Shown here one piece after another: positions 1 through 57,098 of a stretch of DNA of 64,000 nucleotides. A program made the translations under genes and the position numbers. The notes below the pieces were generated by a model. It did not search any database, was not told the origin of the DNA, and saw only the letters and a program-made list of their open reading frames with translations. This DNA comes from Octopus vulgaris (lineage: Eukaryota): NCBI GenBank assembly GCA_951406725.2, contig OX597842.1:31806001-31870000 (forward strand), read 5' to 3'. The first letter of the stretch is position 1. The number at the start of each line of letters is the position of its first letter.

Positions 1-814
1 AAATGTAAAGAATTGTGGAAAGTGTTTCCAAAGCGTTCCACTTTGAAGAACAGAAATGAAAGAAAACCATCAGTGTTCTGGTGGTGCCATTAACACATTT
101 TTGGTTGGTCAGTAACCAAAATGGAATTGTTGAAGGATGTTGTGGGTAGGTAGTGGCAATGGTGGTGGTGGAGGTAGCTACACTGAATCCATATCAAGTT
201 TCAAAGAATTAAATCATGGAATGGAAGAGTTGAAGAAAACCAAGCTAACCTAAAAGTATGGTAGACAGGGCCATGAAGACACATCAAAGATTCCAACATT
301 CCAACTGAAGAATTCTAAGACACCAACAAATAAATTTACAAAATAATTCCATACAGTAAGAAGTCTTTGGCCACTTTAAACTATTGTAAATTTCTACTGA
401 TTGCCAACTTATAAGTGGATGTTTCACATTGCATTTTTCATAGATGAAACATTGACCCTGTTGGAGTAATTTCCATACCTAATCATTATATTTTGTAGTA
501 GGAATTCTGAATGAGAGGGGAAGACGTGAGATGACCATCAAAAATGGCCATCCAAAAGTTTTCAGCCACCTTACATAAACCAATCAAGATTCAGTGTTTT
601 AAAACAGAAAAAATGTCTATAATGAAAATTTATTACATAATGCACATTTCAAGAAGTTACTGTGCATTGTTAATATTCCATGTGGCTTCCCTTAGCTTTA
701 AAAATGTCTTCAATGCGCCTGGGAAGAGATGTGTACAAATCCATCTTTATAGGTATGAGATGCCATTCTTTGTGGTTGAGCTCCCATAGCTGGATTCATT
801 TGGCACTATTCAAG

Positions 815-1261
815 TTACCTCTCTCTCTCTTTACTCTTTTTACTTGTTTCAGTCATTTGACTGGGAAGAGATGTGTACAAATCCATCTTTATAGGTATGA
901 GATGCCATTCTTTGTGGTTGAGCTCCCATAGTTCTTCAAAATTGCATGGATTCTTCTGATGGACTCTCCTCTTTAGTTCTGTCCACATTTGCTTGATAAT
1001 ATTTAAGCCAGGACTCTGGGCTGGCCAGTCTTTCAATACAGTAACACTTTCATCAGCCAGATTCTGTTGTGTTGCATGCAAACTGAGGAATGGAGCTCCA
1101 TTAAGCTGAAAAATCTCTCCTTCATCCAAATTGTCCTTCAGCAACTGGATACATTTGGCACTATTCAAGTTACCATTAATTTTAACCAATTTTCTTGAAC
1201 CATCACTTTTTATGTATACCCAAAGCATCAGACTCTTTCCCACAAACTTCACTGTTTTCAT
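815..1261 (-). pseudogene. Tc1 DDE transposase C-terminal fragment
   Basis: Translation contains FQLNGAP and DWPAQSPGLNIIKQMWTELKRRV, matching Tc1 FQQDNAP and WPxQSPDLNPIE motifs with the catalytic acidic residues mutated. Confidence 0.9.
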
Positions 1262-1267
1262 TGTGTA

Positions 1268-1268
1268 A

Positions 1269-1302
<34 letters not shown>

Positions 1303-1530
1303 GTTTAACATCCGCTTTCCATGCTAGCATGGGTTGGACGGTTCAACTGGAGTCTGGGAAACTAGAAGGCTGCACCAGGCCCCAGTCTGATCTGGTAATG
1401 TTTCTATGGCTGGATGCCCTTCCTAACGCCAACCACTCTGTGAGTGTAGTGGGTGCTTTTTACGTGCCACCGGCACGGGGGCCAGGCGAGGCTGGCAACG
1501 GCCACGATCGAATGGTGCTCTTAACGTGCC
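1268..1530 (-). mobile_element. SINE with (CAT)n/(ATG)n tail inserted in the Tc1 element
   Basis: (cat)n followed by cgtttaacatccgctttccatgctagcatgggttggacgg. The same family recurs at ~27085, 28365, 34055, 35345 and 36310. Confidence 0.8.
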
Positions 1531-1839
1531 AACATATAAGTGAGAATTTGTCAGAAAGCCTCATCACATCTTCCCCTCTCATTCGGAACTTCTACTACAA
1601 AATACAATGATTAAGTATGGAATTAACTCCAACAGGGCCAATGTTTCATCTGTAAACAAACACGATGTGACAAATCCACTTATAAGTTGGCAATTACTAG
1701 AAATTTACAATTGTTTAAAGTGGCCAAAGACTTTTGCACAGTACTATATTTTTGTTTCTATTTCCTTCCTTTGTTGCAGAATATTTTTTTCGATGAATTC
1801 CAAAAATATCAACATAAAACAACAAATACGTCAACCAAC

Positions 1840-2067
1840 CTTTACTATTTCTGTGTCTTGAGGATAAACCACAAAGTTTACAACTTTGATCTGGCTTGAA
1901 TTTAGATCTGAGTAGTTTTTGACTGCTTCATACATAATTCCAGGTAGGTTTTCTATGGGGTACTTCAATTTTCCAGCTCCTATTATAGGAAATGCCAAGC
2001 ATTTTGCTCCCATTTTCTCCGCAGTGTGTAAGCATATGGTAATCATTTGAGTCAAGTTTGCCAGAAT
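1840..2067 (-). CDS. Macrodomain exon B, unit 1 (PARP9/14/15-like macrodomain, C-terminal half)
   Basis: 228 nt, acceptor tttttttag, donor gttggt, phase 0/0. ILANLTQMITICLHTAEKMGAKCLAFPIIGAGKLKYPIENLPGIMYEAVKNYSDLNSSQIKVVNFVVYPQDTEIVK contains the macrodomain hAFPxIGxG loop. Confidence 0.9.
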
Positions 2068-2497
2068 CTAAAAAAAATAATTGTTTAGTAATTGATAATG
2101 AACATTTTATTAAATTATTTCCTTATTACAGGAAGAAACCATTAAGTTGTAATAAATATATTCTCCTCTCACAACTCCTCTCACTCCTACCACTTCTAAA
2201 CATAACTGTCATTCCTATCACTCTTTAGTCCTGCAAGGGACAAGGCAACCTCACTCATGATGCTGCTACAATAAAACAGACCCCATCCACCGTGTAAAAT
2301 GGTTGGTGAATGAAGAGAGACAATGCAGACCCAAGAGGAGTCTTTAGTGTTGTTGAGGACATGACAACCTCTCTAGTGCTCGTGCCATGACAGAGAAAAA
2401 CTCACCAATACAGACAGTAAAACACAGAAATATGTTTTAATATAGTCTTATTTATCAGTCATATAACTGATACAGTTCTATATTTAAGAGATGAGGA

Positions 2498-2643
2498 ATT
2501 ATGTACATTATTTACATATGACAGATATTTGTCCTCATCTTGTTTGTTGCTAACACAACGTTTCAACTGATATACCCTCCAGCCTTCATCAGGTGTCTTA
2601 GGAAATTTCGAAGCTGGGTTCTCATTCCTAAGGTATTTTTCGA

Positions 2644-2687
<44 letters not shown>

Positions 2688-2970
2688 TCACTGTCTAGAA
2701 TTGAACTCAGAATCTAGGGATTAGTAGCCCACACTTTAACCACTATAGAGAGTGCGGGCTACTAACCCCAAGATTCCAAGTTTGATTCCAGGTAGTGACC
2801 TGAATAGTAATAATAATAATAACTTCGAAAAATACTTTAGGAATGAGAACCCAGGTTTGAAATTTCCCCAAGACACCTGATGAAGGCTGGAGGGTATATC
2901 AGCTGAAACGTTGTGTTAACAACAAATAAGATGAGGACAAATATCCGTCAAATGTAATAATATAAATAAT
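2498..2970. mobile_element. Foldback/MITE-like palindrome (~230-bp arms, very short loop)
   Basis: 2498-~2740 is the reverse complement of ~2750-2970 (gacagatatttgtcctcatc ... gatgaggacaaatatccgtc). Absent from the matching intron of unit 2. Confidence 0.85.
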
Positions 2971-3022
2971 GAACATGCATAAGGTTCTTCTCAATTATTA
3001 ACTGTTTCAATAAATCAATATC

Positions 3023-3237
3023 CTTTTTTACTTTAGGCACAAGGCCTGAAATTTTGTAGGAGGGGTCCAGTCGATTAGATCGACCCCAATACACAACTGG
3101 TACTTAATTTATTGACCCCAAAAGGATGAAAGGCAGAGTCGACATCCGTGGAATTTGAACTCAGAATGTAAAGACAGATGAAATATTGCTAAGCATTTCG
3201 CCCAGCATCCTAACATATCTGCCAGCTCACCGCCTTC
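3023..3237 (-). mobile_element. tRNA-derived SINE (family B) with 15-bp TSD
   Basis: caataaatcaatatc at 3008-3022 and 3238-3252. Empty site in unit 2 at ~15011-15025. Confidence 0.85.
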
Positions 3238-3269
3238 CAATAAATCAATATCATATGATTGATACTTAC

Positions 3270-3497
3270 TAAATCAGAGGAATATTCATCCCAGGGAGGT
3301 AATGCCAGATGAAATACATTCTTACAGTTGAGGTTATATCCTTTAGTGATGGCTATTTTAGATGTAGAAATACCTCGAGGATATTTCTGGTTACATTCAT
3401 CTTGTATCTCTGAACCAGCAGCAAAGAGAATAGATTTGGAGACAGCACCACTGTCAAGCTCAAGGTTTTTATTGGTGCTGTTAACGATGACATCAAC
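3270..3497 (-). CDS. Macrodomain exon A, unit 1
   Basis: 228 nt, acceptor ttttgtag, donor gtaagt, phase 0/0. VDVIVNSTNKNLELDSGAVSKSILFAAGSEIQDECNQKYPRGISTSKIAITKGYNLNCKNVFHLALPPWDEYSSDL has the macrodomain DVIVNxxN and GxVSxxIxxAAG motifs. Not in the ORF track. Confidence 0.92.
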
Positions 3498-3769
3498 CTA
3501 CAAAAGTAATTAATGGTAAACAACTAAGGAACATTCCATGGAGAGAAGAGAGATACATTGTTGCAGTTGATATTGTTGTTAAGAAAGGCTCTACAGAATG
3601 GCTGTAGTAAGTTTGAGGTTGTTAAAGTTAGCAAAAGATATACTCAAGATATCAGATGTGAAGGAAATAAGTTTGACTGAGAAAATGTTTTAATTAACTG
3701 TAATGATTCCTTATTTGGAAATGAAATAACATGAAAATATAAATAAGTTACATGAATCTATTTACTCAC

Positions 3770-3904
3770 AGATACATTAGAAATTGAATCAATCAATAGT
3801 TGTATGTTGATGCCAGCATTTTCTCCAGATGCCACATTATCTGGGTGCCACAGAAGAGGGTTCCTGTTGTGAACCAGGAAGGGATGCTTTCGATGATGCA
3901 GTGT
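3770..3904 (-). CDS. Probable linker/N-terminal macrodomain exon C, unit 1
   Basis: Acceptor tttttcag, donor gtgagt. Ends GENAGINIQLLIDSISNVS in phase 0, resembling the IxIxxGDI strand that precedes VDVIVN. The 5' frame is ambiguous. Confidence 0.65.
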
Positions 3905-4659
3905 CTGAAAAAAATAGACAAATATCAGTGTGTGTGTGTGTGTATCATTCACTTCTTTCAGTCATTCGAATGTGGCCATGCTGGGGCACCACCTTGAAGG
4001 CTTTTAGTTGAATGAATTAACCCCGTTATATCTTTTATCTTTTACTTCTTTCAGTCATTCGAATGTGGCCATGCTGGGGCACCACCTTGAAGAATTTTTA
4101 GTCAAATGAATCGACCCCAATACATTAATATTTTAAAGCCAGATACTTATTCTATCAGTCTCCTTTGATAAACCACTAAGTTATGGAAAGTGTGCTCTGG
4201 AACCCTATTACCACCATCTTTCTCCCCTCCAGATACTGTCATGCACCCTTGCATAAATATGAGGAGATCATGAGTCTCCCCTATATCCAGACAACTATGC
4301 TTGACCCTCTGGCAAACTTTAGAATTTCTACCCCTGGCATCAAGGCTCTTCCCCAACCCAATTCCATTGGGGGGTTTTATCCTTTTCCATTTTTTGCTTT
4401 GTTTTGCAAGATACTTGGTGACCTCACCAGTGCTGGTGCCATGAGAAAAGCACACTGTAAAATGGTTGGCAATATGAAGGGCAACCAGCCAGCCAGCCAT
4501 AGAAACCATGCCAAAGCTGAGCGTGGAGCCTAAAACAGATCTGGTGGTCATCAGATCCTGTCAAACTGTGTAACCCATGCCAGAGTAAATGATGGACATT
4601 AAATGAGGATGAGGATAATGATACAGTCCGTGAGTCTGTAAGTCAGAAAAACACGCACT

Positions 4660-5050
4660 CGTACATTTTTCAACAGAGTGGGTATATTACTTACTTGTAC
4701 TTGTGGCGACATTCACCCTGGGTGGGTTGTGTCGGCTTCTTCTACTCATGGAAGAAGTTTCGTGGGGATATGTGGATTTCACAAGCGGTCCCCAACAATC
4801 CCACATGTGGAGACATCCTGTTTGCCACAGATTGTACGCAGACACAGAGACAGAACGACTGGGGAGCTGCCAGTTACCAAAGCAGACACTCCGAGGATTT
4901 TCACCAGAGCCCCGTCTGCCGGGTTGTGGCCCTAATACCACTCAGTGTCAGACCAATCCGCCTTGGGTGGCACTACCAGGAACCGAAGTTCCCGACGGCA
5001 TAGCTCTGACACTACCCATTGCCAGTGTCCCCACCACGGAATGGGCATAT
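4660..5050 (+). repeat. Unclassified ~400-bp interspersed element, copy 1
   Basis: Similar in reverse complement to 10780-11195. Confidence 0.75.
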
Positions 5051-5574
5051 TAAGCGTAAACTATTCAGTATTATAAATCTATTTCAACCATTCTTACAAA
5101 TTTGTTTTGTACCTGATATTGGGTAATTAGGTGATTATCTAAGACTGTGCTCATCAGAGTGGTTGGTATGGAAAAGTTGCAGTAGCTTTCTGTCAGCAAG
5201 TTCCACATCTGGTTTGTGGAAGCTGTGAAAATAACTGAACAAATGAGAAGGAAGCAGTTAGAGAAGGGACCCTATAAAGAATATGTCCCTTGCCCCAAAT
5301 CCCTGAACAAGAAGTAATTACCTGCAAAGTGAGGTTTGGGAGGAGAGGATGGGACAAACACTCAAACAGTTAAACTCATGTCAATGCATTTATGAGTTGC
5401 ACTCAAAAAGTATCTGACTTTATTTTTCCTTCCCATGTGGGAAAAACCCTTTGGGTGAGCAGTGACTTCACCTTTCCTGTGCAACTGCAACTGCTCCTGG
5501 ACATTAAACCTAGAGTATAAACTTGTAGTGTGCACTGGACAGACCTTTGTGTTCATGCAAGATGACCAAATGTA

Positions 5575-5730
5575 TTGAGTAAAGATATTGCATCAAGTTT
5601 TACCAAAAGCTTGGTGACACTCAAGCTCAAAGCATCCAGAAAAGTTCAGCAGGCCTTCAGTAATGATGCCATGGCCAAAACTCAGATAAATAACTCGTAA
5701 AACCACTTCAGACAAAGCCACAACTCAGTG
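5575..5730 (+). mobile_element. Mariner transposase N-terminal fragment
   Basis: Reads like CIKFYQKLGDT...VQQAFSNDAMAKTQI, a mariner HTH region. Confidence 0.6.
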
Positions 5731-5971
5731 GAGTGTGAGGCATGCTCAGACCTTGCATAAATTGTTCACCTCACAACAAATTGTTTACCTTTTGAATGAA
5801 ATCCTTCATTTTCCTGTTTATTTATTACTCCTTCATTTTCGTCTTTATTTTGGAGATATTCATCAAATTTCTGTTAAAACAGAAAACAATCAGAATCACT
5901 TTTATGTTTTATTTTTTCATTCTTGCAAAAGGAAGAGATTTAATTCAACAAAACGAAACAAAATATTTGAA

Positions 5972-6570
5972 ATACAAGGTCTGATCAATAAGTATTTGAA
6001 CTGTTGCCTTAGTAAGGAAGCTAAAGTAAGCAGAGTGAAGCTGCTTGGCACAGATTGACCTTAGCTTACTTCCGTTGATTACAGTAGAGCTTGGAAATAA
6101 CATGTGTAACATGAAATTGAAATATCGACCATGACAGAAAAAGTTGTCATGGTGATACCTGCTCAATGGCACACACAAAATTGCAGAAAGTGTATGGAGA
6201 GGAGTGTATGAGCTGCACACAAGTGTACAAGTGGTTCAGACATTTCCAAAATTGCCGTAAAATGTCGAGAGTGACAAATGTTCGGGGAGACCCACAGACA
6301 ACATAAATGAGTAAAACGCTGCAGATGTGCATGCAGCTGTGAGGGGAAATCATTGAATCACCATCCTTGAGTTATCAGAGGATGTGCAGATTAGTTACAG
6401 TTCAGTTCAGTCGATTATCACTGAAGATTTGGGTGTGAGATGCATGTCTGCCAAGTTTGTGCCAAAACTGCTTTCAGTTGATGAAAAAGACATTTGGATT
6501 TCAGTTGCACAAAATCTCCTTGACTGTGTTGAGAACGGTGAAATCTTTTTGAAAACTTTGCATAGGTCTC
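5972..6570 (+). mobile_element. Mariner-like element, 5' TIR plus degenerate transposase
   Basis: Starts tacaaggtctgatcaataagt. Encodes ISYSSVQSIITEDLGVRCMSAKFVPKLLS, similar to the mariner WVPxxL motif. Confidence 0.85.
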
Positions 6571-6574
6571 TGAG

Positions 6575-6700
6575 CAGGTATCACGAAGCTTTTGACAAAA
6601 TTTGATGCAGATTCTCTTCTTCTTCATGGTCAATGCAACAACCACACACTACACACCTTCTTTCCAAGCACTGCTGTAAACAGTAGACGTGAGCTAGAAC
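6575..6700 (-). mobile_element. Mariner transposase N-terminal fragment, opposite strand
   Basis: Translation contains KRICIKFCQKLRDTCSETY. Confidence 0.6.
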
Positions 6701-7089
6701 GGGTATGTCAAACATGCAGCCCATTGCAAAACACCTGTGACCCACACAGACAGCCACCCTTTTCCCCTGAATGCATTGGCATCTTTGGATTTGGATCTGA
6801 TTACAAGCAAGAAGAAAGTTATACAATTATTCAGAGGCCCAGAGTTGCGAAATTTCCCATCAGCAAGCTAGCAATTGGCTAATCTGTGACTCCAGATGTT
6901 TTGTACATCAAATGTTACAGGTGTTTGAACATTGTGGAATGTACCTGTCAACGTTCATATGAGTTGATTTTCCTTTCTTCTCTTCATCATTCATTAAATT
7001 CTCATCTGGTAGACAGAGTTCATAGAGTGCTTTCAAGCCCTGCATTGCCTGTGTCCTGCGATTCTTGTCCCAGTGTGCTGCATTTCTGG

Positions 7090-9402
7090 TGAGTAGATTT
7101 ACAAATCTATTTTGTCTTTAAACTGAATGGAGGAGGGCGAGTGTTTCAAGAAAAATGGGAATTATAGTATTTTTGCACAACAGTGAGTGGAAAGATACAC
7201 TGAAAGAGTACAACTTGAAAAGACATTATGAAACATATCATCGATCTTATGATAAATATGGAGGTGGTTCAATGCATGTTTCAAGACTCAAGGAACTGAA
7301 GGCTAACTCAACACAGCAACAGACCTGTTTCACAGAAAAATCAGAAAGGGAATGTCGCTTCCGTTACAGAAAGCTATAAACTCCACCAAATGATCGCCAA
7401 GAATGGGAAATCTTACAGTGAAGGAGATTTCATAAAGCAATGCTTTGTAAAAAACGTCTGAAATTGTGTGTGCAGAGAAAGCATACTTATTCAAAGATAT
7501 CTCATTAACCAGGAACACTGTTGCTCAATGGATTGATGAAATGTCAGGTGATCTGAAGCAACAGTTGAAAGCTGCATCATCAAGATTTGAACATTTTGTA
7601 TTGCTATTGATGAGACCATTGACATCACTGGAAAAGCACAGCTCGCAGTCTTCATCGGGGCCTGTGACAGTGAATTTAATATTTATGAAGAACTGATTGA
7701 ACTGATCTCCATGCATGATACTACAACAAGCCAAAACATCTTTGAGAAAGTCGAACGGGTTCTGTATGATTATGGTTTTGATTTGAGTAAACTTGCACAC
7801 TTATCTATTCATGGTGCAGTGAATATAGTTGGCAGACATAATGTGTTTCTGCTAAGTTACAAACAAAAATAAAAAATTTGCATCTGGATCCATTAGTTGC
7901 ACATTTTCATTGCATTATTCATCAGCAAAATTTGTGCTCAAAGATTTTAAAATTGGATCTTGCGCTTAGTTTGGTCACAATGACAGTGAACTATATCAGA
8001 GGCCACGCTTTCAACCACTGTCAATTCAGTCAGTTGTTGAAAGATATGGATAATCAGTTCACTGATGTTCCATTCTTCACAGAAGTCTGCTGGTTTTCAT
8101 GCCACAAAGTGCAGAAAATATTTCATTCGTTGAAATAAGAAATAATTATGTTTTTGGAGATGAAAGGTCAAAAACAGATGAAACAAAAGATGAGAGGTGA
8201 TTCCAGGATCTGGCTTTTGCTGTGGACATTACTGCACAATTAACTAATCTCGATTTGTAATTACAAGGTAAAAACAAACCCATCACTCAGTTGTATGGTG
8301 ACATCAAGTGCTTCATTAGAAAATGAAGCTTATGGAAGTCACAGTTGTCAAATGAAAATTTAATCCATTTTCCTAAGTGCAAAGAGCTGAAAAACTGCAC
8401 TAATACTGAGTCTGTACTTAGCTTTGCTAAGTATGACAGTCACCTGGAATTTCAGGAAAGATCTCTCATCTTTTGAACATCTGTTTGCATTATTCTCAGC
8501 ACCATTCACCTTTGATGTTGCTAAGGCAAAAGAAAGTCTGCAGAGGAAGCTATTCAAAATGCAGTCAGATTCTTCACTCAGATCAAAGTATTTTGAAGTG
8601 GGGATAACTGGTTTCTTTTCATACCTTCCTGAAAACTTTAAAGACTTCAGAAAGTTTACCACAAGGATTATGGCAATGTTTCATTCTACCTGTGTGTGTA
8701 AACAGTTATTTTCCTTCATGAAATCAACAAAAACTTCTCAGAAAACAAGACTGACAATCAACACTTGTTATCTGTTTCTTTATTACCCACAAGGGGCTAA
8801 ACATAGAGAGGACAAACAAGGACAGACAAACGGATTAAGTCGATTACATCGACCCCAGTGCGTAACTGGTACTTAATTTATCGACCCCGAAAGGATGAAA
8901 GGCAAAGTCGACCTCGGCGGAATTTGAACTCAGAGCGTAACGGCAGACAAAATACGGCTACGCATTTCGCCCGGCGTGCTAACGGTTCTGCCAGCTCGCT
9001 GCCTTTTATCACTTGTTATCTCTGATCAAACTCAGAACTGCACAGACATTTCAGCCAGACAAACCAAAAATTTTCAGCAAAAAGGTGTCAAGCCTCACGA
9101 CAAAATACTGAAAATGTTTGAAAAGTTGTAACTAAATGTTCATTTTGAACTATTGTAAATTTTGTACGATATATTTGTTGCTGTTGCATTCACATCTATG
9201 TTGCCTATTTAAGCTTCATTTTTTTTCTTTTGGTTAAAGTACTTCATTACTTACCCAAAGTATGTTTCTAAGTTTAAGTAAGAAAAATATTCTGCAATAA
9301 TTTTTATGAAATGACTTCAATTGGAATTGAAGCGAGTGCAGCCCTTGTGACAACACAAATGTGGCCCATATGGCTCTTGGGAGCCCCTCACTCTGACATG
9401 CC
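7090..9402 (+). mobile_element. Degenerate hAT (Charlie/SPIN, GTF2IRD2-like) transposon
   Basis: Frameshifted pieces LKEYNLKRHYET, ISLTRNTVAQWIDEMSGDL, HCIIHQQNLCSK and a hAT dimerisation-like tail (MAMFHSTCVCKQLFSFMK). Probable 3' end tgacatgcctg near 9402. Confidence 0.88.
8774..9009 (-). mobile_element. SINE family B monomer with 12-bp TSD
   Basis: cacttgttatct at 8762-8773 and 9010-9021. tRNA-like head with a B-box (gagttcaaattcc). Confidence 0.9.
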
Positions 9403-9444
9403 TGAGCTAGAATGTTAAAACTTAGTGAGCATGCACAACAGAGT

Positions 9445-9540
9445 TCGAGGTCAATCTGTACCAAGTGGCATAACTCTGCATGCTTTAGCTTCATTACTCT
9501 GGCAACAGTCCAGATATTTATTGATCAGACTGTGAACTTA
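9445..9540 (-). mobile_element. Mariner 5' end fragment
   Basis: Reverse complement of ~5972-6062 with scattered mismatches. Confidence 0.75.
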
Positions 9541-10359
9541 ACGATTTATTTCTCATCAATAACAAACAAACGAGGAAAATTATTTTGTTATTCAGATCAA
9601 AGCTATTCCATGTATAACCGTCCATGTCTTCCAGAAGATATGAAACCTGTCTCAATATGGTAATACAGTGGATGCGGCAGAAAAACCTCTCACAATTTAC
9701 ATGGCCACTGATGTAGTGTTAGTGAAGTTAAACATGTGGCAATGGTGTCTTCATGTAGCTGAAGTTGTATTGTTTCTTCTCTCCACTCACCATTCTGATT
9801 AAAACTGCTGAGTCTTGTGTTTGCTGTTGAAATGTCTATCAAGAATGTTGAAGTTGAGGTTCTTTGGTGCATCTTGTGTAGCCAAGAATATTTGAGCAAC
9901 AAAAGCAGAGTACAAGGTAATTATTTTCATATTGTAAGCAAGAAGGAGGAGGTGGAAGAGGTCCAACAATTAGGATCATGGTCATTCTTAAGAGAGATGA
10001 CAAAGGAAAAGAGAAAAGATTCAAAAAGAAAGAACTTCACAAACAGTTCTACAGTGGACAGGAATTTCCCCAATTTCTTCATTACAGCATATGGACATAA
10101 AGAATGCCTTTTGGTATTAACACTGCTTCTGTTGCTATTAATTATCTTTAATAAGCCTTCAGGCTATTTGTGACATCACTGTCTATATATCGTTGACAGG
10201 GAGATTTGGCTGTTATGCTGCTACAGGGTGTCTGTCACTGATGAACTTGAGCAGGGCGAAAATACGTGATCTGGCAGTTCTGGTGCCTTTAGCAGATGAT
10301 TGTTGTCCACCAACAATATGCACCACATCTGCCTAAAAATTGACTTCAGTTTAAATTCA

Positions 10360-10668
10360 GTTTCACCACTCTGACTCTGAGTCCTCTACTGTTGGCACCT
10401 CTGACTCTGACTCTTCTGTATGTAATTAAGTAATTGTGGTCAACCTATCTCATAAAGCATATGCATACACTTGTACTTTGAGTAGGCCTATATGTTATAA
10501 CTGGTTTATATTAAAGAATGAAGGCATTGTGAGTCAGAGTCGGTATAGTTTTACCGACTCCAACTCCAGCTACCCCTTAATTGTTTCGACTCCATCTCCA
10601 ACTCCACAACTCTGACACTCTGACTCCAACTCCATGACTCAAACTTCAGCTCTGACTCCACAGTTCTG
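10360..10668. mobile_element. Degenerate non-autonomous DNA element with (GACTCC/GACTCT)n subterminal repeats
   Basis: Repeated gactcc/gactct hexamers ending ctccacagttctg. The class assignment is from recall. Confidence 0.45.
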
Positions 10669-10689
10669 GTTTATTCAACAAGCACACAG

Positions 10690-11195
10690 TGTAAATACCA
10701 TATGCAACATCTTATAGGATTGAGTACTACATACATAAATACAAGAACAGGGAGATAAACATACAAACAATGTCTACTGGCAGTCCCCAAAGTCCATACC
10801 CTTCTCACCGTGGTGGGGACGCTGACAACGGGTAGTGTCAGAGCTATGCCGTTGGGAACTTCGGTTCTTGGTAGGGCCACCCAAGGTGGATTGGTCTGAC
10901 ACAGAGTGGTATTAGGGCCACAACCCGGCAGACGGGGCTCTGGTGAAAATCCTTGGAGTGTCTGTTTCAGCAACCGGTGGCTCCTCGGTCATTCTGCCCC
11001 TGCATCTGCGTACTATCTGCGGCAAACAGGATGTCTCTACATGCGGAATTGTTGGGGACCACTTGTCAAATCCACATATCCCCACGAAACTTCTTCCATG
11101 AATCCTCAATGGCGAATACAATGCCTCGAGGGTGGTGGAAGAAGCCAACTCAACCCGTCCAGGGTGAATGTCACCGCAAGTACAAGTAAGTACTG
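10690..11195 (-). repeat. Unclassified interspersed element, copy 2 (longer, with AATAAA-containing 3' tail)
   Basis: Inverted homologue of 4660-5050. Confidence 0.75.
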
Positions 11196-11399
11196 GCAGA
11201 GAATGAGCAAATGAAAACATCACAGGATTTAAGGTCAATAACAAAAATAAGCAACAGAAAGACTTCAAAAACTCAGATAATATAAAAGACAGTGGCAATA
11301 ATATTAAAATGAATCATCAAAAAAGATCCAACAAAATGGATTACCGATTTCACAATGTTCCAGATACTAACAATCAAATGGAACATCATGAAAACAGAA

Positions 11400-11830
11400 T
11401 CAAAAAGTCATGAGATAAATATAAAAATTAATAGTACAAATAACTGTACAAGCTGTAGAAAATCCACTTGTCTGCTCATGAACCAATGTGTCCAAAAAAA
11501 CATAGTATACAAATAAACAATCTCCACCTCCCAACATAAATATGTGTACATAGGTGCCATGGAAAACCAATTCAAAGTCAGTTATCACAGCCACACGTTG
11601 TCATTCCGAAAAATAAACAGACAACACGCAACTTCACTGGCAGACCTCATATGGGGAATGAAAGAATCATAAATTAAATACAAAATGGAATGGTCAATAA
11701 TAAAAAATGCACACCTGTGTGGTTCGTTACTTGAGGAAGCATTGAGTATACTGATGAATAATGAGAACCTGGTAAACAAGCATGATGAGAAAATTCCAGA
11801 GTATAATCACTGTGCCAAATATGCATTTTC
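11400..11830 (+). mobile_element. Penelope-like retroelement GIY-YIG endonuclease remnant
   Basis: Hand translation CTSCRKSTCLLMNQCVQKNIVYK*TIST...VYIGAMENQFKVSYHSH...TSLADLIWGMKES*IKYKMEWSII shows the VY..YIG motif and two in-frame stops. Confidence 0.85.
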
Positions 11831-12000
11831 AAGATGGGACAGTGTATAAAAATATCTATAATTTAGTTTCCCCACTCCACCCATTCTTCCCATTCCACAT
11901 ATGTATGTGTGTGTGTATATGTTGGGGTGCTCAAGGATATGCCTATGCGAATGCATATGTGTAGGTAAATGAATGTATAGGTGTGAATGGGATTCTTGAT

Positions 12001-12019
12001 CAGAGAGAGAGAGAGAGAG

Positions 12020-12104
<85 letters not shown>
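12001..12104. repeat. (GA)n(GT)n microsatellite
   Basis: Direct reading. Confidence 0.95.
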
Positions 12105-12106
<2 letters not shown>

Positions 12107-12810
12107 ACATTCACAATCCAGCATTGCCATGGCAGGATTTGAAATCAGAATGCCAAGTACTGAAACGAACACCACAGAAGGTCTTCTGTCATTCTTCTAC
12201 TTCTATGAATCCAACAGAGAAGACGGACATTTTTATGAATTGTGAAGGAATAAAAGGTTAGTATGGCACCGGCAGGATTTGAACTGAGAATACTAAGGGC
12301 TGAAACAAAGATTAGAAGGTTTCCTATCTGCCAGTTTTGACGACAGCAGACTGTGATTTAAGAGACACTTGGCTGCTATTACTAGCAAGTCAAGGCACAG
12401 CATAGAAGCCCCTTAATTGATTCATCCAACTTTGAGAAGAAATGTAAAGAATTGTGGGAAAGAGTTTCCAAAGCGTTCCACTTTGAAGAACAGAAATGAA
12501 AGAAAACCATCAGTGTTCTGGTGGTGCCATTAACACATTTTTGGTTGGTCAGTAACCAAAATGGAATTGTTGAAGGATGTTGTGGGTAGGTAGTGGTAGT
12601 GGTGGTGGTGGAGGTAGCTACACTGAATCCATATCAAGTTACTAAGAATTAAATCATGGAATGGAAGAGTTGAAGAAAACCAAGCTAACCTAAAAGTATG
12701 GTAGACAGGGCCATGAGACACATCAAAGATTCCAACATTCCAACTGAAGAATTCTAAGACACCAATATATAAATTTACAGAAGGATTCCATATTTTTGTT
12801 TCTATTTCCT

Positions 12811-13690
12811 GGATAAAACACAGCAGAGGATCATGGACTGGCAACTCAAGCTGGCTGTGGACAAATGTACCACCATGCATTTTGGGAGGAAAAACTCAGC
12901 GTCTACTTACTCCCTCCACAACACTAATCTCAAAAAGTCTTCTTGTGAACGTGACCTGGGCATTATTGTCGACAGTGATTTGTGTTGGACAAAACACATT
13001 GCTAAAATTGCCAAGAAGGCTGAGGGTGTCTTGGCATCACTCACCAAGTCCTTTGTGAGCCACTCTCCGGCTATCTATCTGCAGCTTTATATAGCTATGG
13101 TGTGGCCTCAACTGGAATTTGCATCACTGGTCTGGAACCCCTATCTTTCTCAGGATATTAATCGTCTGGAAACCGTTCAGCGACGTGCAACTAAGAGAAT
13201 ACCCTCCATCAGGCATTTGCCATATTCTGAATGCCTTACTTCCCTGGGCATGGATACATTGAAACTCCGACGTCTGGCAGCTGACTTGGTAGACACTCAT
13301 AAAATTATTAACCATCTTACAAACAATAACTCTGAGCACCTTTTCAAACTCCACCTGTCTAACACCCGTGGACATGTTTACAAAGTCAGAAAACAGCACA
13401 GCTCCTTCCATGACTTTCGGAAACATTTTTTCACGCTGAGAGCTGCTGAAGCATGGAACAAACTGCCGGCATCAGTTGTTAGTTGTTGGAGCACTGCATC
13501 CTTCAAAACTTCCATGCTTCCTCAGATTTGCCAACACTACACCTGATCTTTCTCCCCTCCATACACACGCGAGCATGTATCTGACTCATACACTGTTCAC
13601 TTCCCAGACATTTGTACATTACTGCAGATGCTTTATACGCACTTTTGACAAGTTGTGGTGCACCTGAGCACTGTATACAATAATTTCCAT
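12811..13690 (+). mobile_element. CR1-clade LINE, 5'-truncated 3' end (RT C-terminus)
   Basis: The 237-aa ORF has KCTTMHFG, ERDLGIIVD, LETVQRRATK and NTRGH motifs. Followed by a 3' UTR ending in ttattattcat. Confidence 0.92.
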
Positions 13691-13699
13691 TATTATTCA

Positions 13700-14118
13700 T
13701 TTACTCTTTTACTCTTTACTCATTTACTTGTTTCAGTCATTTGACTGCGAAGCCATGCTGGAGCACCGCCTTTAGTCGAGTAACTCGGTCCCGGGTCTTA
13801 TTCTTTTTTTGTAAGCCCAGTACTTATTCTATCGGTCTCTTTTTGCCGAACCGCTAAGTGACGGGGACGTAAACACACCAGCATCAGTTGTCAAGCAATG
13901 CTAGAGGGACAAACACAGACACACAAACACACACACGCATATATATATATACATATATACGACAGGCTTCTCAGTTTCCGTCTACCAAATCCACTCACAA
14001 GGCATTGGTTGGCCCGGGGCTATAGCAGAAGACACTTGCCCAAGATGCCACGCAGTGGGATTGATCCCGGAACCATGTGGTTGGTTAGCAAGCTACTTAC
14101 CACACAGCCACTCCTGCG
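13700..14118 (-). mobile_element. SINE family A, full length (tRNA head, internal TA/TG microsatellite, TTACTCTT-type tail)
   Basis: Minus strand starts ggcgcaggagtggctgtgtggtaagtagc. The family recurs throughout the window. Confidence 0.9.
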
Positions 14119-14201
14119 CCTATTTAATGTAGAATTTTTTTTTTTTTGTAAATTCCAAAAATATCAACTTAAAACAACAAATGGAAAATAAACAAACCAA
14201 C

Positions 14202-14429
14202 CTTTACTATCTCTGTGTGTTTTGGAAAAACAAAGTAAACATCTTTGATGCAGCTTGAATTTTGATTTGAATAGTTTTTCACGAAGCTTCTATACATAGT
14301 TCTGGGCAGGTTTTCAATGGGATAATTCAATGTTCCAGCTCCTAATATAGGAAATGCAAGGCTTTTTGTTCCCATTCTCTCAGCAGCTTCCAGACAAGTG
14401 GTTATTATTTGAGTCAAGTTTGCCAGAAT
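14202..14429 (-). CDS. Macrodomain exon B, unit 2
   Basis: 228 nt, same splice sites and phase as 1840-2067. ILANLTQIITTCLEAAERMGTKSLAFPILGAGTLNYPIENLPRTMYRSFVKNYSNQNSSCIKDVYFVFPKHTEIVK. Confidence 0.88.
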
Positions 14430-15042
14430 CTAAAAAAAATAATTATTTAGTAATTGATAATGAACATTTTATTAAATTATTTCCTTATTACAGGAAGAAA
14501 CCATTAAGTTGTAATAAATATATCCTCCTCTCACAACTCCTCTCACTCCTACCACTTCTAAACACAACTGTCATTCCTATCACTCTTTAGTCCTGCAAGG
14601 GAACAAGGCAACCTCACTCATGAAGCTGCTACAATAAAACAGACCCAATCCACCGTGTAAAATGGTTGGTGAATGAAGAGAGACAATGCAGACCCAAGAG
14701 GAGTCTTTAGTGTTGTTGAGGACATGACAACCTCTCTAGTGCTCATGCCATGACAGAGAAAAACTCACTAATACAGACAGTAAAACAGAGAGAAATATGT
14801 TTTAATATAGTCTTATTTATCAGTCACATAACTGTTGTTAGGCCATGAGGCTTTTTTCCTTCTATTTATATATAAAAGTGTCCTGTTCATCGATATCTTC
14901 TGCTTCCTTCCAATGATAACTTGGAAGAACAAATATTAAACAGGATGCTGACATTTGCTTTATGATTCTCACACAACATGCATAAGGTTCTCTTCAAACA
15001 TTAACTGTTTCAATAAATCAATATCATATGATTGATACTTAC

Positions 15043-15270
15043 TGAATCAGAGGAATTTTCATCCCAGGGAGGTAATGCCAGATGAAATACATTCTTACAT
15101 TTGAGGTTATATCCTTTAGTGACGGCAATTTCAGATGCAGAAATACCTTGAGGATATTTCTGGTTACATTCATCTTGTATCTCTGAACCAGCAGCAAAGA
15201 GAATATATTTGGAGAAAAAACCCTTTTGAAGCTGGAGTTCTTTATTGGTGCTGTTAATGATGACATCAAC
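15043..15270 (-). CDS. Macrodomain exon A, unit 2
   Basis: 228 nt, acceptor ttttcaag, donor gtaagt. VDVIINSTNKELQLQKGFFSKYILFAAGSEIQDECNQKYPQGISASEIAVTKGYNLKCKNVFHLALPPWDENSSDS. Confidence 0.9.
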
Positions 15271-15520
15271 CTTGAAAAGTAATTAATGGTAAACAACTAA
15301 GGAACAGTCCATGGAGAGAAGAGAGATACATTGTTGCAGTTGATATTGTTGTTAAGAAAGGCTCTACAGAATGGCTGTAGTAAGTTTGAGGTTGTTAAAA
15401 TTAGCAAACGATATACTCAAGATATCAGATGTGAAGGAAATAAAATGTTTGAGTTTGACTGAGAAAATGTTTTAATTAACTTTAACGATTCCTCATTTGA
15501 AAATGAAATAACAATTAAAT

Positions 15521-15620
15521 NNNNNNNNNNNNNNNNNNNNNNNNNNNNNNNNNNNNNNNNNNNNNNNNNNNNNNNNNNNNNNNNNNNNNNNNNNNNNNNN
15601 NNNNNNNNNNNNNNNNNNNN
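15521..15620. other. Assembly gap (100 N)
   Basis: Run of n. Confidence 1.
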
Positions 15621-16500
15621 TCTTTCCCTTCTGCTCCCCTCTCTCTATAACGTCACTGCATCCCCTCTCTCCCTCTCTCCCTCTCTTCCCGCTTTCTGCC
15701 TTTCACCATCTCTTGCTCCTCTCTATGATTCCTCTATTTGTCTGTCTCTCTCTCTCTCGCTCTCTTTCTGTTGCGTCTATCACTCGCCCGCTTCCTCTCT
15801 CTCTCTCTCTCTGTTGCATCTATCTCCCGCACGACTGCTTTCCTTCCCCTCCCTCCCTCTCTCTCTGTTGCAGCTCTCTCTCCCCCTCTCGTTCTCTGCC
15901 TTCCTTTCTCACGTTTTTCTCTTGTTGCTCTCTCAGATTCCCTTGCCTGTCTCTCTCTTTCTTTCTCTCTCCCTCAATTGCATCTATCTTTCTCTCTCTC
16001 TCTCTCTGTCCTGCTGTCTTTCTTCCCTGTTGCCTCTCTCTCTTTCTTTCTTTCTCTCAGTTGCATCTATCTTTTCCCGCTTTCACTCTCTCTCTCTCTA
16101 TCTGTCCTGCTGTCTTTCTCCCCTGTTGCATTTATCTCCTCCCGCTTCCTCTCTATCCCTTTCTTTCTCACCCTTTCTCCGGCTTCCCCTGCACCCCCTC
16201 TCTCTCTCTTTCTCTCCTATCTATAATTCTACTCCCACTACCCCTCTTCCTCTCGGTTCAACTCTTTCACAACCACTGCATCCCTCTCCTTGTGACTACC
16301 TTACCTTCTTTACTCTCTCTCTCTCTGTCTTCCACCCCTCTTTCACTCTTACCATTCTTTCTACTGCACCTCTCCCTCTCTTACCACTCTTTCTCCTGCA
16401 CCTTTTACTCTCAAACACCTCTCTATAATAATCACTACTTTCCTCTGCCTATCCCTATTACTCCCTTACTGCTGTTACTCTTTCTCTCTCTCTCTCTTTT
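15621..16500. repeat. CT-rich low-complexity/polypyrimidine tract
   Basis: Degenerate (CT)n. The overlapping Ser/Leu-rich ORFs are compositional artefacts. Confidence 0.9.
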
Positions 16501-21858: not shown

Positions 21859-22186
21859 TTGGTCATAATTGGTCATATATGGACCAAATGTTCTACACAT
21901 TTTGTGTTCACACTGACCAGATCCAGCCTTTCACACCTACCCTACAATGTCATTCTGAAAAATATTGAAATCCCAAAGCTATGAGATAATCTGTGGTTAA
22001 TTGGAAACAATGCAAATAAAGAAGGATTAGATTTGAGAGAGAAATCCGAATGCTAGTGGGAAGGTGTTACAGTTCAGAGATGAAACACCTGGTTATAATT
22101 GGATACGGCCTGATGACATCGGTTCCACTTGGACAAAGTTCCATTCACTTTGTTCCTTCTCGAGCCATCATCATCATCAATGTTCG

Positions 22187-25100
22187 ACCGTGGTCGAGAC
22201 AATGGAATTTACCATGCTACACCAGACTTCACGGTCCATCATGGCATTACGGAGGTCCTGTTGCTTGATGCCTGTATCCCTGGAGATTAGATCAGGGTAG
22301 GAGAGTGTGCGCCCTCTGGTATCGCGACCGTGGTCGAGACAATGGAATTTACCATGCTACGCCAGACTTCACGGTCCATCATGGCATTACGAGGTTGTGC
22401 TGGATGCTGTCCGAATTCATCAGGGTTGGAGAGTGTGCGCCCTCTGGTATCGCGACCGTGGTCGAGACAATGGAATTTACCCTGCTACGCCAGACTTCAC
22501 GGTCCATCATGGCATTACGGAGGTCCTGTTGCTGGATGCTTGTATCCCTGGAGATTACATCAGGGTTGGAGAGTGTGCGCCCTCTGGTATCGCGACCGTG
22601 GTCGAGACAATGGAATTTACCCTGCTACGCCAGACTTCACGGTCCATCATAGCATTACGGAGGTCCTGTTGCTGGATGCCTGTATCCCTGGAGATTACAT
22701 CAGGGTAGGAGAGTGTGCACCCTCTGGTATCGCGACCGTGGTCGAGACAATGGAATTTACCATGCTACACCAGACTTCATGGTCCATCATGGCATTACGG
22801 AGGTCCTGTTGCTGGATGCCTGTATCCCTGGAGATTAGATCAGGGTAGGAGAGTGTGCACCCTCTGGTATCGCGACCGTGGTCGAGACAATGGAATTTAC
22901 CATGCTACGCCAGACTTCACGGTCCATCATGGCATTACGGAGGTCCTGTTGCTGGATGCCTGTATCCCTGGAGATTAGATCAGGGTAGGAGAGTGTGCAC
23001 CCTCTGGTATCGCGACCGTGGTCGAGACAATGGAATTTACCATGCTACGCCAGACTTCACGGTCCATCATAGCATTACGGAGGTCCTGTTGCTGGATGCC
23101 TGTATCCCTGGAGATTACATCAGGGTAGGAGAGTGTGCACCCTCTGGTATCGCGACCGTGGTCGAGACAATGGAATTTACCATGCTTACGCCAGACTTCA
23201 CGATCCCTCATATCATTATGGAGGTCCTGTTGCTGGATGCCTGTATCCCTGGATATTTCATCAGGGTAGGAGAGTGTGCGCCCTCTGGTATCGCGACCGT
23301 GGTCGAGACAATGGAATTTACCATGCTACGCCAGACTTCACGGTCCATCATGGCATTACGGAGGTCCTGTTGCTGGATGCCTGTATCCCTGGAGATTAGA
23401 TCAGGGTAGGAGAGTGTGCGCCCTCTGGTATCGCGACCGTGGTCGAGACAATGGAATTTACCATGCTACGCCAGACTTCATGGTCCATCATGGCATTACG
23501 GAGGTCCTGTTGCTGGATGTTTGTATCCCTGGAGATTACATCAGGGTAGGAGAGTGTGCGCCCTCTGGTATCGCGACCGTGGTCGAGACAATGGAATTTA
23601 CCATGCTACACCAGACTTCACGGTCCATCATGGCATTATGGAGGTCCTGTTGCTGGATGCCTATATCCCTGGATATTACATCAGGGTAGGAGAGTGTGCA
23701 CCCTCTGGTACCGCGACCGTGGTCGAGACAATGGAATTTACCATGCTACACCAGACTTCACGGTCCATCATGGCATTACGGAGGTCCTGTTGCTGGATGC
23801 CTGTATCCCTGGAGATTAGATCAGGGTAGGAGAGTGTGCGCCCTCTGGTATCGCGACCGTGGTCGAGACAATGGAATTTACCATGCTACGCCAGACTTCA
23901 CGGTCCATCATGGCATTACGGAGGTCCTGTTGCTGGATGCCTGTATCCCTGGAGATTAGATCAGGGTAGGAGAGTGTGCGCCCTCTGGTATCGCGACCGT
24001 GGTCGAGACAATGGAATTTACCATGCTACGCCAGACTTCACGGTCCATCATAGCATTACGGAGGTCCTGTTGCTGGATGCCTGTATCCCTGGAGATTACA
24101 TCAGGGTAGGAGAGTGTGCGCCCTCTGGTATCGCGACCGTGGTCGAGACAATGGAATTTACCATGCTACGCCAGACTTCACGGTCCATCATAGCATTACG
24201 GAGGTCCTGTTGCTGGATGCCTGTATCCCTGGAGATTACATCAGGGTAGGAGAGTGTGCGCCCTCTGGTATCGCGACCGTGGTCGAGACAATGGAATTTA
24301 CCATGCTACGCCAGACTTCACGGTCCATCATGGCATTACGGAGGTCCTGTTGCTGGATGCCTGTATCCCTGGAGATTAGATCAGGGTAGGAGAGTGTGCG
24401 CCCTCTGGTATCGCGACCGTGGTCGAGACAATGGAATTTACCATGCTACGCCAGACTTCACGGTCCATCATAGCATTACGGAGGTCCTGTTGCTGGATGC
24501 CTGTATCCCTGGAGATTACATCAGGGTAGGAGAGTGTGCGCCCTCTGGTATCGCGACCGTGGTCGAGACAATGGAATTTACCATGCTACGCCAGACTTCA
24601 CGGTCCATCATGGCATTACGGAGGTCCTGTTGCTGGATGCCTTTGTATCCCTGGAGATTACATCAGGGTAGGAGAGTGTGCGCCCTCTGGTATCGCGACC
24701 GTGGTCGAGACAATGGAATTTACCATGCTACGCCAGACTTCACGGTCCATCATGGCATTACGGAGGTCCTGTTGCTGGATGCCTGTATCCCTGGAGATTA
24801 GATCAGGGTAGGAGAGTGTGCGCCCTCTGGTATCGCGACCGTGGTCGAGACAATGGAATTTACCATGCTACGCCAGACTTCACGGTCCATCATGGCATTA
24901 CGGAGGTCCTGTTGCTGGATGCCTGTATCCCTGGAGATTACATCAGGGTAGGAGAGTGTGCGCCCTCTGGTATCGCGACCGTGGTCGAGACAATGGAATT
25001 TACCATGCTACACCAGACTTCACGGTCCATCATGGCATTATGGAGGTCCTGTTGCTGGATGCCTATATCCCTGGATATTACATCAGGGTAGGAGAGTGTG

Positions 25101-25250
25101 CGCCCTCTGGTATCGCGACCGTGGTCGAGACAATGGAATTTACCATGCTACACCAGACTTCATGGTCCATCATAGCATTACGGAGGTCCTGTTGCTGGAT
25201 GCCTGTATCCCTGGAGATTACATCAGGGTAGAAGAGTGTGCGCCCTCTGG
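22187..25250 (-). repeat. Tandem array of 22 copies of a 140-bp unit equal to the 3' end of an RTE LINE
   Basis: gaccgtggtcgagacaatgg recurs from 22187 to 25117 at mostly 140-bp spacing (one 127-bp unit, and 141/142-bp variants). Confidence 0.95.
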
Positions 25251-25605
25251 TATTGCAAGTAGATGGCTTCCAGAGGAGAAGAGTAGAAATTACCTTGTTT
25301 TCAGCTCTACAACATTGTCCAGCAAACTGGACTCTCCTACCTTTCACAAGAGATGACACAGGTGGTAGTTTCCCATATATTTGCATTTTGGTTGGATGGC
25401 GCTTCCACGAGAGATTTTGAGCTCTCATAAGGAGGCGAGTGTAGGTTCCATCCAACTGCCTCTCAAGCTTCTTTGATAACGTCCAGGTTTCTGAGCCATA
25501 GAGTAGAATTGGTTCAACTGTGGCTTTGAAAATTTCAAGTTTGAAGTCTCTACTTAGATTTGATGACCAGATCTTATGCATCGCATTACAGGCTGACCAG
25601 GCCAT
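25078..25605 (-). mobile_element. RTE-clade LINE, 5'-truncated (RT C-terminal region)
   Basis: Translation has IFKATVEPILLYGSETWTL, RRVQFAGQCCRA and RGRTLFYPDVISRD. The (GAT)n tail lies beyond the array at ~22168-22182. Confidence 0.9.
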
Positions 25606-53298: not shown

Positions 53299-53340
53299 CA
53301 CATAAAGGCAGTGATTTACAGCAGAAGCAGCAGCAGCTGC

Positions 53341-56891: not shown

Positions 56892-56924
<33 letters not shown>

Positions 56925-57065: not shown

Positions 57066-57098
<33 letters not shown>

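Follow-up and report, generated by a model that had tools for sequence, protein, structure and literature searches.

Why should an exon differ far more between the copies of a gene module than the intron beside it? The question is raised by a 64,000-nt stretch of the Octopus vulgaris genome (positions 31806001-31870000 of contig OX597842.1, here C29, in a 2.8-Gb assembly), referred to below as the window. It carries, on the minus strand, copies of a cassette of four exons, K, L, A and B, that encodes one macro domain of the PARP14 macro domain 2 type. Two of these copies, unit 1 and unit 2, were compared with each other and with further copies on C29 and on another chromosome, C1. The comparison gave a robust result: the cassette exons and introns have different genealogies, and the copies exchange sequence. 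The explanation favoured here, with moderate confidence, is that the similarity of the introns is young, through conversion or a recent burst of duplication, while the exon variants are older and were kept, probably by selection, and shuffled by short-tract gene conversion. This is a known process, that of duplicates under conversion, in a new family.

Exon B of unit 1 occupies positions 1840..2067 of the window (minus strand, 228 nt, phase 0-0) and encodes the C-terminal half of the macro domain (ILANLTQMITICLHTAEK...TEIVK); that of unit 2 lies at 14202..14429 (minus strand, 228 nt, ILANLTQIITTCLEAAER...HTEIVK) and has an open frame. Between the two, 45 of 225 ungapped sites are substituted (80.0% identity), and unit 2 has two in-frame insertions or deletions (indels) of 3 nt relative to unit 1, which compensate each other. 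The adjacent part of the A-B intron, 2068-2469 against 14430-14834, differs at 9 of 402 sites (97.8% identity; Fisher p = 8.5e-14 for the two counts). An earlier note on this DNA had claimed that exon B is far more diverged than the adjoining intron, at synonymous and non-synonymous sites alike, and this is upheld: synonymous divergence (dS) in exon B is 0.47 and non-synonymous divergence (dN) 0.18, against about 0.02 in the adjacent intron, and the peptides quoted there (ITICLHTAEK and ITTCLEAAER) were read correctly. Divergence is not uniform along the computed alignment, and a maximum chi-squared scan placed the best single change-point at 2044/2045 (permutation p <= 0.0005). The break thus falls 23 nt inside exon B, positions 2045-2067 being identical in both units, and not at the splice acceptor where it had first been put; across the family, too, exon B is no more variable than the intron over its first 25 nt, with a nucleotide diversity (pi) of 0.027. 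A dense block of 10 changes in 27 nt, mostly silent (ATG ATT ACC ATA TGC TTA CAC ACT GCG), is found at codons 8-16 of unit 1 exon B (window ~2020-2046). The Octopus bimaculoides cassette L079 has the same CLHTA peptide as unit 1, encoded by different codons.

The divergence of other parts of the two units shows which of the two values is the unusual one. The L-A intron is ~95% identical between them, and so, at 96.6%, is a non-coding block 1.5 kb downstream (1..353 downstream of unit 1, paired with 12440..12792 downstream of unit 2, without assigned strand), the homology of which extends to about -270 and 12110. Because the intron and the downstream non-coding DNA are equally alike, the background divergence of the two units is 3-5%, and the exons are the outliers. 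Exon A (3270-3497 against 15043-15270) is 90.8% identical and thereby also exceeds its flanks in divergence, although in another manner than exon B: it has 19 non-synonymous and 2 synonymous differences (dN 0.114, dS 0.042, dN/dS ratio (omega) 2.7), its dS being comparable to the intron divergence (K) of 0.05. The comparison of unit 2 with the unit upstream of the window, at C29:31.781 Mb, gave the same picture, with 7 of 590 intron sites different and exon B 79% identical (dS 0.45).

A six-frame search of the O. vulgaris genome revealed at least 51 exon A/exon B pairs, of which 40 were analysed; diversity figures refer to the 31 collinear copies with an uninterrupted A-B intron of ~600 bp, and those for exon L to 29 copies. 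Three cassette sites are on C29 and the rest are clustered on C1, at 5.3-5.75, 7.5-9.4, 206-207 and 215.8-216.4 Mb. The cassettes are partly arranged in tandem inside PARP14-like genes, 12-27 kb apart, and both macro exons (A and B) are open in 39 of 40 copies. Pi is ~0.03 in the last 270 bp of the L-A intron and 0.030 in the A-B intron, as against 0.093 in exon A, 0.113 in exon B, where roughly half of the sites vary, and 0.18 in exon L. The contrast between exon and intron is therefore present across all 31 cleanly alignable copies and is not the outcome of an event between two units, as had been assumed. The 403-bp intron segment of unit 1 itself is 98% identical to at least 11 C1 copies, as close as or closer than it is to unit 2 (97%). 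When the whole genome was searched with this segment, 40 of 40 scored matches adjoined a cassette exon B, which rules out that the intron is a dispersed transposon.

The family homology begins ~25-30 bp upstream of exon L, after a dinucleotide microsatellite, and stops ~55 bp past exon B. In many copies a (CA)n, (TG)n or (TA)n microsatellite is located ~35-50 bp upstream of exon L (for example, at window ~3925-3950), and this may mark an exchange boundary or hotspot. Large intron insertions or a replaced intron middle were found in 9 of 40 copies; inclusion of seven such long-intron copies inflates intron diversity to 0.108. A second type of A-B intron is present in L064-L073 (C1:215.8-216.4 Mb), at C1:5.445 Mb and in the O. 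sinensis locus L078; it shares with the common type only 40 bp at the start and 45-100 bp at the end, around an unrelated core of ~740 bp or more, which means that not every cassette intron has been homogenised. Two cassettes are broken, L041 (C1:8.900 Mb) by a frameshift in an exon B of 227 nt and L071 (C1:216.343 Mb) by a stop codon in exon L; these may be pseudo-cassettes that could still act as conversion donors.

Silent sites bear on the interpretation of exon B. The family medians of dS and dN are 0.085 and 0.108 for exon A and 0.232 and 0.115 for exon B, while median K is 0.039 for the A-B intron and 0.045 for the upstream (L-A) intron. With near-duplicates removed, mean dS of exon B is 0.236 (bootstrap interval 0.17-0.32). 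Silent divergence in exon B is thus 6-20 times intron divergence (dS 0.23-0.47 vs K 0.02-0.04), at an omega of 0.4-0.5. Positive selection alone cannot explain exon B, since its silent divergence far exceeds that of the intron. The transition/transversion ratio and the share of A/G changes are similar in exons and introns, and RNA editing as the driver of A/G changes in the exons was rejected on this ground.

The exons also bear direct traces of exchange. Exon B motifs (GAGKL/GAGTL/GSGVL/GA-EM, PGI/PRT, VVN/DVY and several C-terminal tails) recur among the copies in varied combinations. The pairwise homoplasy index (PHI) test was significant in all four segments (p 0.002-0.03; exon B p = 0.002), 252-405 pairs of sites failed the four-gamete test in the exons, and the minimum number of recombination events per 100 bp was 6.6-7.9 in exons and 1.5-2.9 in introns. 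Intron K is uncorrelated with dS or dN of exon B and with dN of exon A (Spearman rho -0.05 to -0.08), and the replacement distances of exons A and B are likewise unrelated (rho 0.05). These results agree with the suggestion of the earlier note that the units are mosaics in which exon and intron have separate histories and gene conversion is involved. Its alternative, the import of a whole exon B from one older paralogue, does not fit the patchwork of short motifs: along unit 1 exon B the nearest relative shifts from the upstream C29 unit (first third) to C1:5.752 or 216.054 (middle third) and on to C1:9.195, 8.056 or 216.054 (last third). For this reason, and because no copy is closer than 89%, the import of one complete exon B was ruled out. 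At 38 of the 45 sites that distinguish exon B of units 1 and 2, each of the two alleles is also carried by further, non-duplicate copies; seven private alleles belong to unit 2 and none to unit 1. Such a pattern had been described as the reverse of the usual one, yet in this gene class it is the documented signature of duplicates under conversion together with selection on coding sequence (PMC3924837).

Very young duplicates show the process over a shorter time. Seven comparisons in five groups of near-identical duplicates, whose aligned 1-kb flanks are 99-100% alike, gave a difference of 3.1% in exons and 1.0% in non-coding DNA (p 6e-13), and of these differences, 84% in exons and 77% in non-coding DNA were variants that other copies already have. 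This reuse of existing variants fits conversion from paralogues and not new mutation, and it indicates that the exchange is still going on. One such duplicate includes unit 1: C29:31.776-31.822 Mb (window ~-30000 to 16000) is an inverted duplicate of C1:9.368-9.409 Mb (L031, L032, L046 and L060), 99% identical over 20 kb aligned, with the same layout of three cassettes at the same spacing (11.77 and ~27.5 kb), and it extends to ~40 kb. Unit 1 and its C1 twin are separated by 7 differences in exon A, of which 6 are replacements, and by no substitutions in exon B or in the intron sequence shared by the family. The pair represents a segmental duplication between chromosomes of very recent date or else a haplotype left uncollapsed and assigned to a different scaffold, and it marks a region where the assembly needs checking. 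A third near-identical copy of the upstream unit lies at C1:207.056 Mb.

In order to place the two kinds of divergence in time, O. vulgaris was compared with two O. bimaculoides cassettes (L076 and L079) and two O. sinensis loci. The A-B intron is 97.0% identical among O. vulgaris copies and 92-93% (range 90.5-94.3) between O. bimaculoides and every O. vulgaris copy, whereas exon B is 88.6% identical among O. vulgaris copies and 88-89% between the two species. The trees built from separate segments, a check that the earlier note had called for, disagree on the placement of O. bimaculoides: in the intron tree O. vulgaris and O. sinensis group together as a single clade with a long stem, while in the exon trees L079 is nested within O. 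vulgaris/O. sinensis. In the A-B intron, 22 of 575 sites separate L076 from all O. vulgaris copies, and requiring both O. bimaculoides copies to differ leaves 8 of 574 sites as fixed differences. The ratio of sites polymorphic in O. vulgaris to those fixed between the species is 118:1 in exon B and 116:22 in the intron (p 9e-6). If shared polymorphism is taken to mean a difference between the two O. bimaculoides copies whose alleles both segregate in O. vulgaris as well, its ratio to fixed differences is 14:0 in exon B, five of the 14 sites being third codon positions, and 1:8 in the A-B intron (p 1.8e-5). The haplotypes CCT GGA ATT / CCC AGA ACA (PGI/PRT) and GTT GTA AAC / GAT GTT TAC (VVN/DVY) are identical letter for letter in O. 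vulgaris and O. bimaculoides, silent sites included, although they are differently combined in the two species. Since an independent origin of linked silent changes is unlikely, the exon variants predate the species split, and the likeness of the O. vulgaris introns to one another dates from after the O. vulgaris/O. bimaculoides split. A 31-bp indel (A-B intron 474-504), found in eight O. vulgaris copies (e.g. L049, L051-L056, L074) and in O. bimaculoides L076, represents an old polymorphism or else a slippage deletion that arose repeatedly; it was dropped as a trans-specific marker because the 7-bp direct repeat AGTTGTG on its flanks would allow it to recur.

The identity of the encoded protein bears on why such variants should be kept. 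Exons A and B together match the Pfam Macro family (PF01661, E 1e-19) over profile positions 1-113 of 118, with scores of 71 and 68.9 bits for the two units (cut-off 22). In a phmmer search of PDB, macro domain 2 of human PARP14 (3Q71, E 3e-19) was the closest solved structure, and PARP14 macro domains 1-2 (3VFQ) matched with E 6e-31. In the alignment with 3Q71, DVIVNS pairs with DVVVNS and AFPIIGAGKLKYP with AFPAIGTGNLGFP, so that the conserved N-terminal Asp/'VNS.N' strand and the 'AFP..G.G' phosphate loop are aligned. Related gene models in O. vulgaris, O. sinensis and O. bimaculoides are annotated as PARP14- or PARP15-like and comprise RRM, macro and PARP catalytic parts; the octopus proteins P0001, P0003, P0006 and P0007 contain the cassette at 55-69% identity over the matched stretches, together with macro 1 and a C-terminal PARP domain, and the O. 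sinensis RefSeq model XP_029633869.1 has five cassettes in series followed by a PARP catalytic domain. Catalytic, WWE and macro 1 exons were not found by tblastn between -30000 and 64000 of the window. Macro-PARPs are known for recurrent positive selection on their macro domains in mammals and for gene turnover (PMC4038475). The most variable residues of the cassette (positions 11-22, 33 and 68 of exon A; 14-19, 33, 43, 54-55 and 60 of exon B) lie beside loops that align with the ligand-binding loops of 3Q71.

Taken together, these data would be explained as follows. The module, which runs for ~1.5 kb from the acceptor of exon L and ends ~55 bp beyond exon B, would be subject to ectopic gene conversion and unequal exchange among the copies. 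In the introns, exchange and recent duplication would have left the copies ~97% alike in a species-specific way, while in the exons a pool of older alternative motifs would not have been erased. This pool most plausibly persists because cassettes with different ligand-facing residues are favoured, that is, by diversifying selection of the kind expected for an antiviral macro-PARP; short conversion tracts would bring the motifs into new combinations, and silent differences would hitchhike on the retained motifs and so raise the silent divergence of exon B to about ten times that of its own intron. A role of diversifying selection is plausible, both because mammalian macro domains are recurrent targets of selection (PMC4038475) and because the most variable residues adjoin the segments aligned with ligand loops. 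Two parts of this account are inferred: the exon diversity is taken to be maintained by selection, and the uniformity of the introns to come mainly from conversion and less from a burst of duplication in the very recent past.

Several observations weigh against this explanation. The block at codons 8-16 of unit 1 exon B recurs only in the upstream C29 unit and in the C1 twin, and no other donor was found among the 40 sampled copies. Family-wide omega is 1.3 in exon A, where the bootstrap interval of dN-dS includes zero, and 0.5 in exon B. The introns are not all alike, the L-A intron having six polymorphisms shared between the species and zero fixed differences. The parts of the O. vulgaris PARP14-like paralogues outside the cassettes are 92-98% alike and 78-89% identical to O. 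bimaculoides, so that much of the intron uniformity could be due to a burst of duplication in the recent history of this lineage, with no need for special homogenisation; under such a burst, the exon diversity would have had to be re-imported by conversion. The sample comprises two O. bimaculoides cassettes and 40 of the at least 51 in O. vulgaris, and in a long-read assembly of a repeated family some copies could be chimeric.

The nearest competitor takes the burst further: the copies would descend from one ancestor recently enough to have ~3% neutral divergence, and the exons would then have diverged fast under positive selection. Exon A is what this predicts, at least in part. Its few synonymous and many non-synonymous differences between units 1 and 2, at a dS near that of the intron, are accompanied by an omega of 2.4-3.9 in pairs around the window, by dN above dS in 479 of 666 pairs and by an about equal variation of the three codon positions, and the other parts of the paralogues look young too. 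Exon B shows neither an omega above one nor a dS close to the intron value; its 6- to 20-fold silent excess is beyond the reach of selection on the protein, most of the differences between the two units can be found among the other copies, O. bimaculoides has identical multi-nucleotide haplotypes down to the silent sites, and shared polymorphisms occur with no fixed difference. A burst followed by acceleration is therefore considered unlikely.

In a bolder form of the favoured explanation, the more than 50 hypervariable macro-domain cassettes make up a germline library under active diversification, with conversion shuffling the ligand-loop motifs. On this view the uniform introns would belong to the mechanism itself instead of being a by-product, either as a homology substrate that sustains exchange or through control of splicing, possibly with variable inclusion of cassettes. 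As a whole this proposal is speculative and probably goes too far.

It is quite improbable that the introns are instead held constant by function, such as splicing control, an intronic RNA or a partner in RNA editing, and that the exons show the true age of the duplicates. The sharp edges of the family homology on either side of the module would suit this, as would the 92-93% identity of cassette introns between the species, compared with 78-89% for other non-coding parts of the same genes, and a cassette whose exon lengths (82+137+228+228 nt for K, L, A and B) sum to a kept reading frame and would permit skipping. However, the downstream blocks, well outside the module, are as similar as the introns, a large insertion or a replaced middle is tolerated by nearly a quarter of the copies (9/40), no Rfam match was found in window 1-16000, and there is no clear excess of A/G changes that would indicate editing. 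The A-B introns of O. vulgaris moreover have fixed differences from O. bimaculoides, and functional constraint leaves unexplained why the differences of young duplicates mostly copy other paralogues.

Mutagenesis directed at the exons, by error-prone repair or transcription-associated hypermutation, would lift silent and replacement changes together, as is seen in exon B, and might account for dense clusters such as that at codons 8-16 and for the threefold higher difference of exons in very young duplicates. It is nevertheless very improbable: the spectrum of transitions and transversions in the exons matches that of the introns, most differences of young duplicates pre-exist in other copies, the motif haplotypes are common to both species, and the intron-like uniformity of the first 23-25 nt of exon B is not predicted by a process acting on the whole exon. 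An assembly artefact, in which reads from different copies were joined into false mosaics, might be suspected from the 99% identical inverted duplicate on C1, which makes the region hard to assemble, and from the gap of unknown bases (N) within unit 2, but is hardly credible given the same contrast in independently placed C1 duplicates and in all 31 alignable cassettes, and the same exon motif variants and intron type in the separately assembled genomes of O. sinensis and O. bimaculoides.

In primate red/green opsins and colobine RNASE1, conversion has homogenised the introns while divergence peaks in a selected exon; this situation has been modelled by Teshima and Innan and is usually explained by conversion combined with selection against conversion in the exon (PMC3924837). 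As in these genes, the introns of octopus paralogues are more alike within a species than to their orthologues, coding differences are common across species, and the exon peak stands between homogenised introns; direct evidence of exchange was obtained as well. Unlike these systems, which consist of two or three copies with few fixed functional substitutions, the octopus family has at least 51 copies and varies combinatorially. In this respect it resembles the major histocompatibility complex (MHC) class I/II genes and plant resistance (R) gene clusters, with their clustered paralogues, short-tract shuffling of motifs, variants shared across species and occasional broken copies that can still donate (PMC3924837, in part). 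The diversity here, however, is among paralogous cassettes of one genome and not among alleles of a population, and the product is a predicted intracellular ADP-ribose-binding module and not a surface receptor, for which selection is a plausible proposal.

In arthropod Dscam, variable exon units that are frame-neutral are arranged in tandem arrays with conserved flanking intron. The octopus cassettes are similar in having frame-neutral variable exons with conserved intron flanks, and differ in lying 12-27 kb apart and in being joined in series, several together, in the RefSeq model, and not chosen one at a time; the five serial cassettes of the predicted O. sinensis mRNA would argue against strict mutual exclusion. 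In venom toxin genes, such as snake PLA2 and conotoxins, introns are far more conserved than exons and the silent rates of the variable exons are raised, which is usually credited to accelerated substitution. In the octopus, by contrast, most differences are reused variants, some of them found in more than one species, which points to retention and shuffling. The vertebrate genes PARP9/14/15 belong to the same family and have the same domain, and selection and frequent duplication and loss have been reported for them (PMC4038475). They are few, with two or three fixed macro domains, whereas the octopus has dozens of macro-2-type cassettes, some of them serial in one gene; PMC4038475 describes neither a contrast between intron and exon nor conversion, and the term 'gene conversion' is absent from it (0 occurrences). 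The literature searched yielded no paper on PARP14-like expansions in octopus or molluscs, and the cassette array is apparently undescribed in octopus.

Macro-PARPs are among the fastest-evolving antiviral genes of vertebrates, and the same domain is multiplied here in a cephalopod, an animal without adaptive immunity. The contrast between exon and intron is among the clearest sequence signs that diversity itself may be retained. If confirmed, the array would be a tractable system for the interplay of conversion and selection in a large family and a candidate locus of invertebrate immune diversity; were the library proposal true, it would constitute a combinatorial invertebrate repertoire for reading or removing ADP-ribose marks, set against viral macrodomains or ADP-ribosylating effectors. 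As gene trees of these cassettes mix several histories, orthology calls and dN/dS values cannot be trusted in octopus PARP14-like genes as long as recombination is left out of account.

The remaining features of unit 1, all on the minus strand, are as follows. The splice sites of exon B are conserved in units 1 and 2 (tttttag/ATTCTGGCA ... AAAG/gttggttg, the slash marking the junction). The A-B intron spans 2068..3269 (1202 nt) and is homologous to that of unit 2 only over 2068-2469, the conserved family intron, and ~85 bp at its 5' end. Two insertions make it twice as long as the unit 2 intron (1202 vs 613 nt): one of ~490 bp at ~2470-2960, a near-perfect palindrome round an (ATT)n run that resembles a miniature inverted-repeat transposable element, and one of ~215 bp at 3023-3237, which resembles a short interspersed nuclear element and has a 15-bp target duplication, CAATAAATCAATATC. 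Elements of the same family as the latter occur at 8769-9005, 35843-36078, 38067-38486 and 61163-61952 of the window. Exon A (3270..3497, 228 nt, phase 0-0) encodes the N-terminal half of the macro domain, VDVIVNSTNKNLELDSGAVSK..., and has splice sites conserved in both units (ag/GTTGATGTC ... TTA or TCA/gtaagtat), the donor of unit 1 being TTA/gtaagtat.

The L-A intron of unit 1 (3498..3769, 272 nt) is conserved family-wide. The linker exon L (3770..3904) has 135 nt, compared with 137 nt in most copies, and its frame is disrupted by a 2-bp deletion near 3839/3840 (CCCAGA/TAATG; other copies CCCAGAACTAATG). The 99%-identical copy of this exon on C1 has an 18-bp in-frame deletion spanning the same spot, which could be a second, compensating deletion or an assembly error. 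A further linker, exon K (5789..5870, 82 nt, KFDEYLQNKDENEGVINKQENEGFHSK+G), was located by tblastn with the O. sinensis protein P0001 and by its splice sites; in related mRNAs it follows exon B of the preceding cassette.

Unit 2, also on the minus strand, has a standard family A-B intron (14430..15042, 613 nt) and an exon A of 228 nt in phase 0-0 (15043..15270). The next interval, 15271..15620, holds the L-A intron and then a run of Ns (15521-15620, 100 bp), an assembly gap at the site where exon L is expected. The gap is followed by ~3 kb of CT-rich simple and tandem repeats (15.6-18.4 kb). Satellite arrays were found at 22185-25253 (140 bp x 22), 43799-45129 (69 bp x 19), 47453-53299 (62 bp x 95, 5.8 kb with 95% matches) and 56809-57865 (87 bp x 12), and the right half of the window consists mostly of repeats, with satellite arrays and strong GC/AT skews in 42-60 kb.

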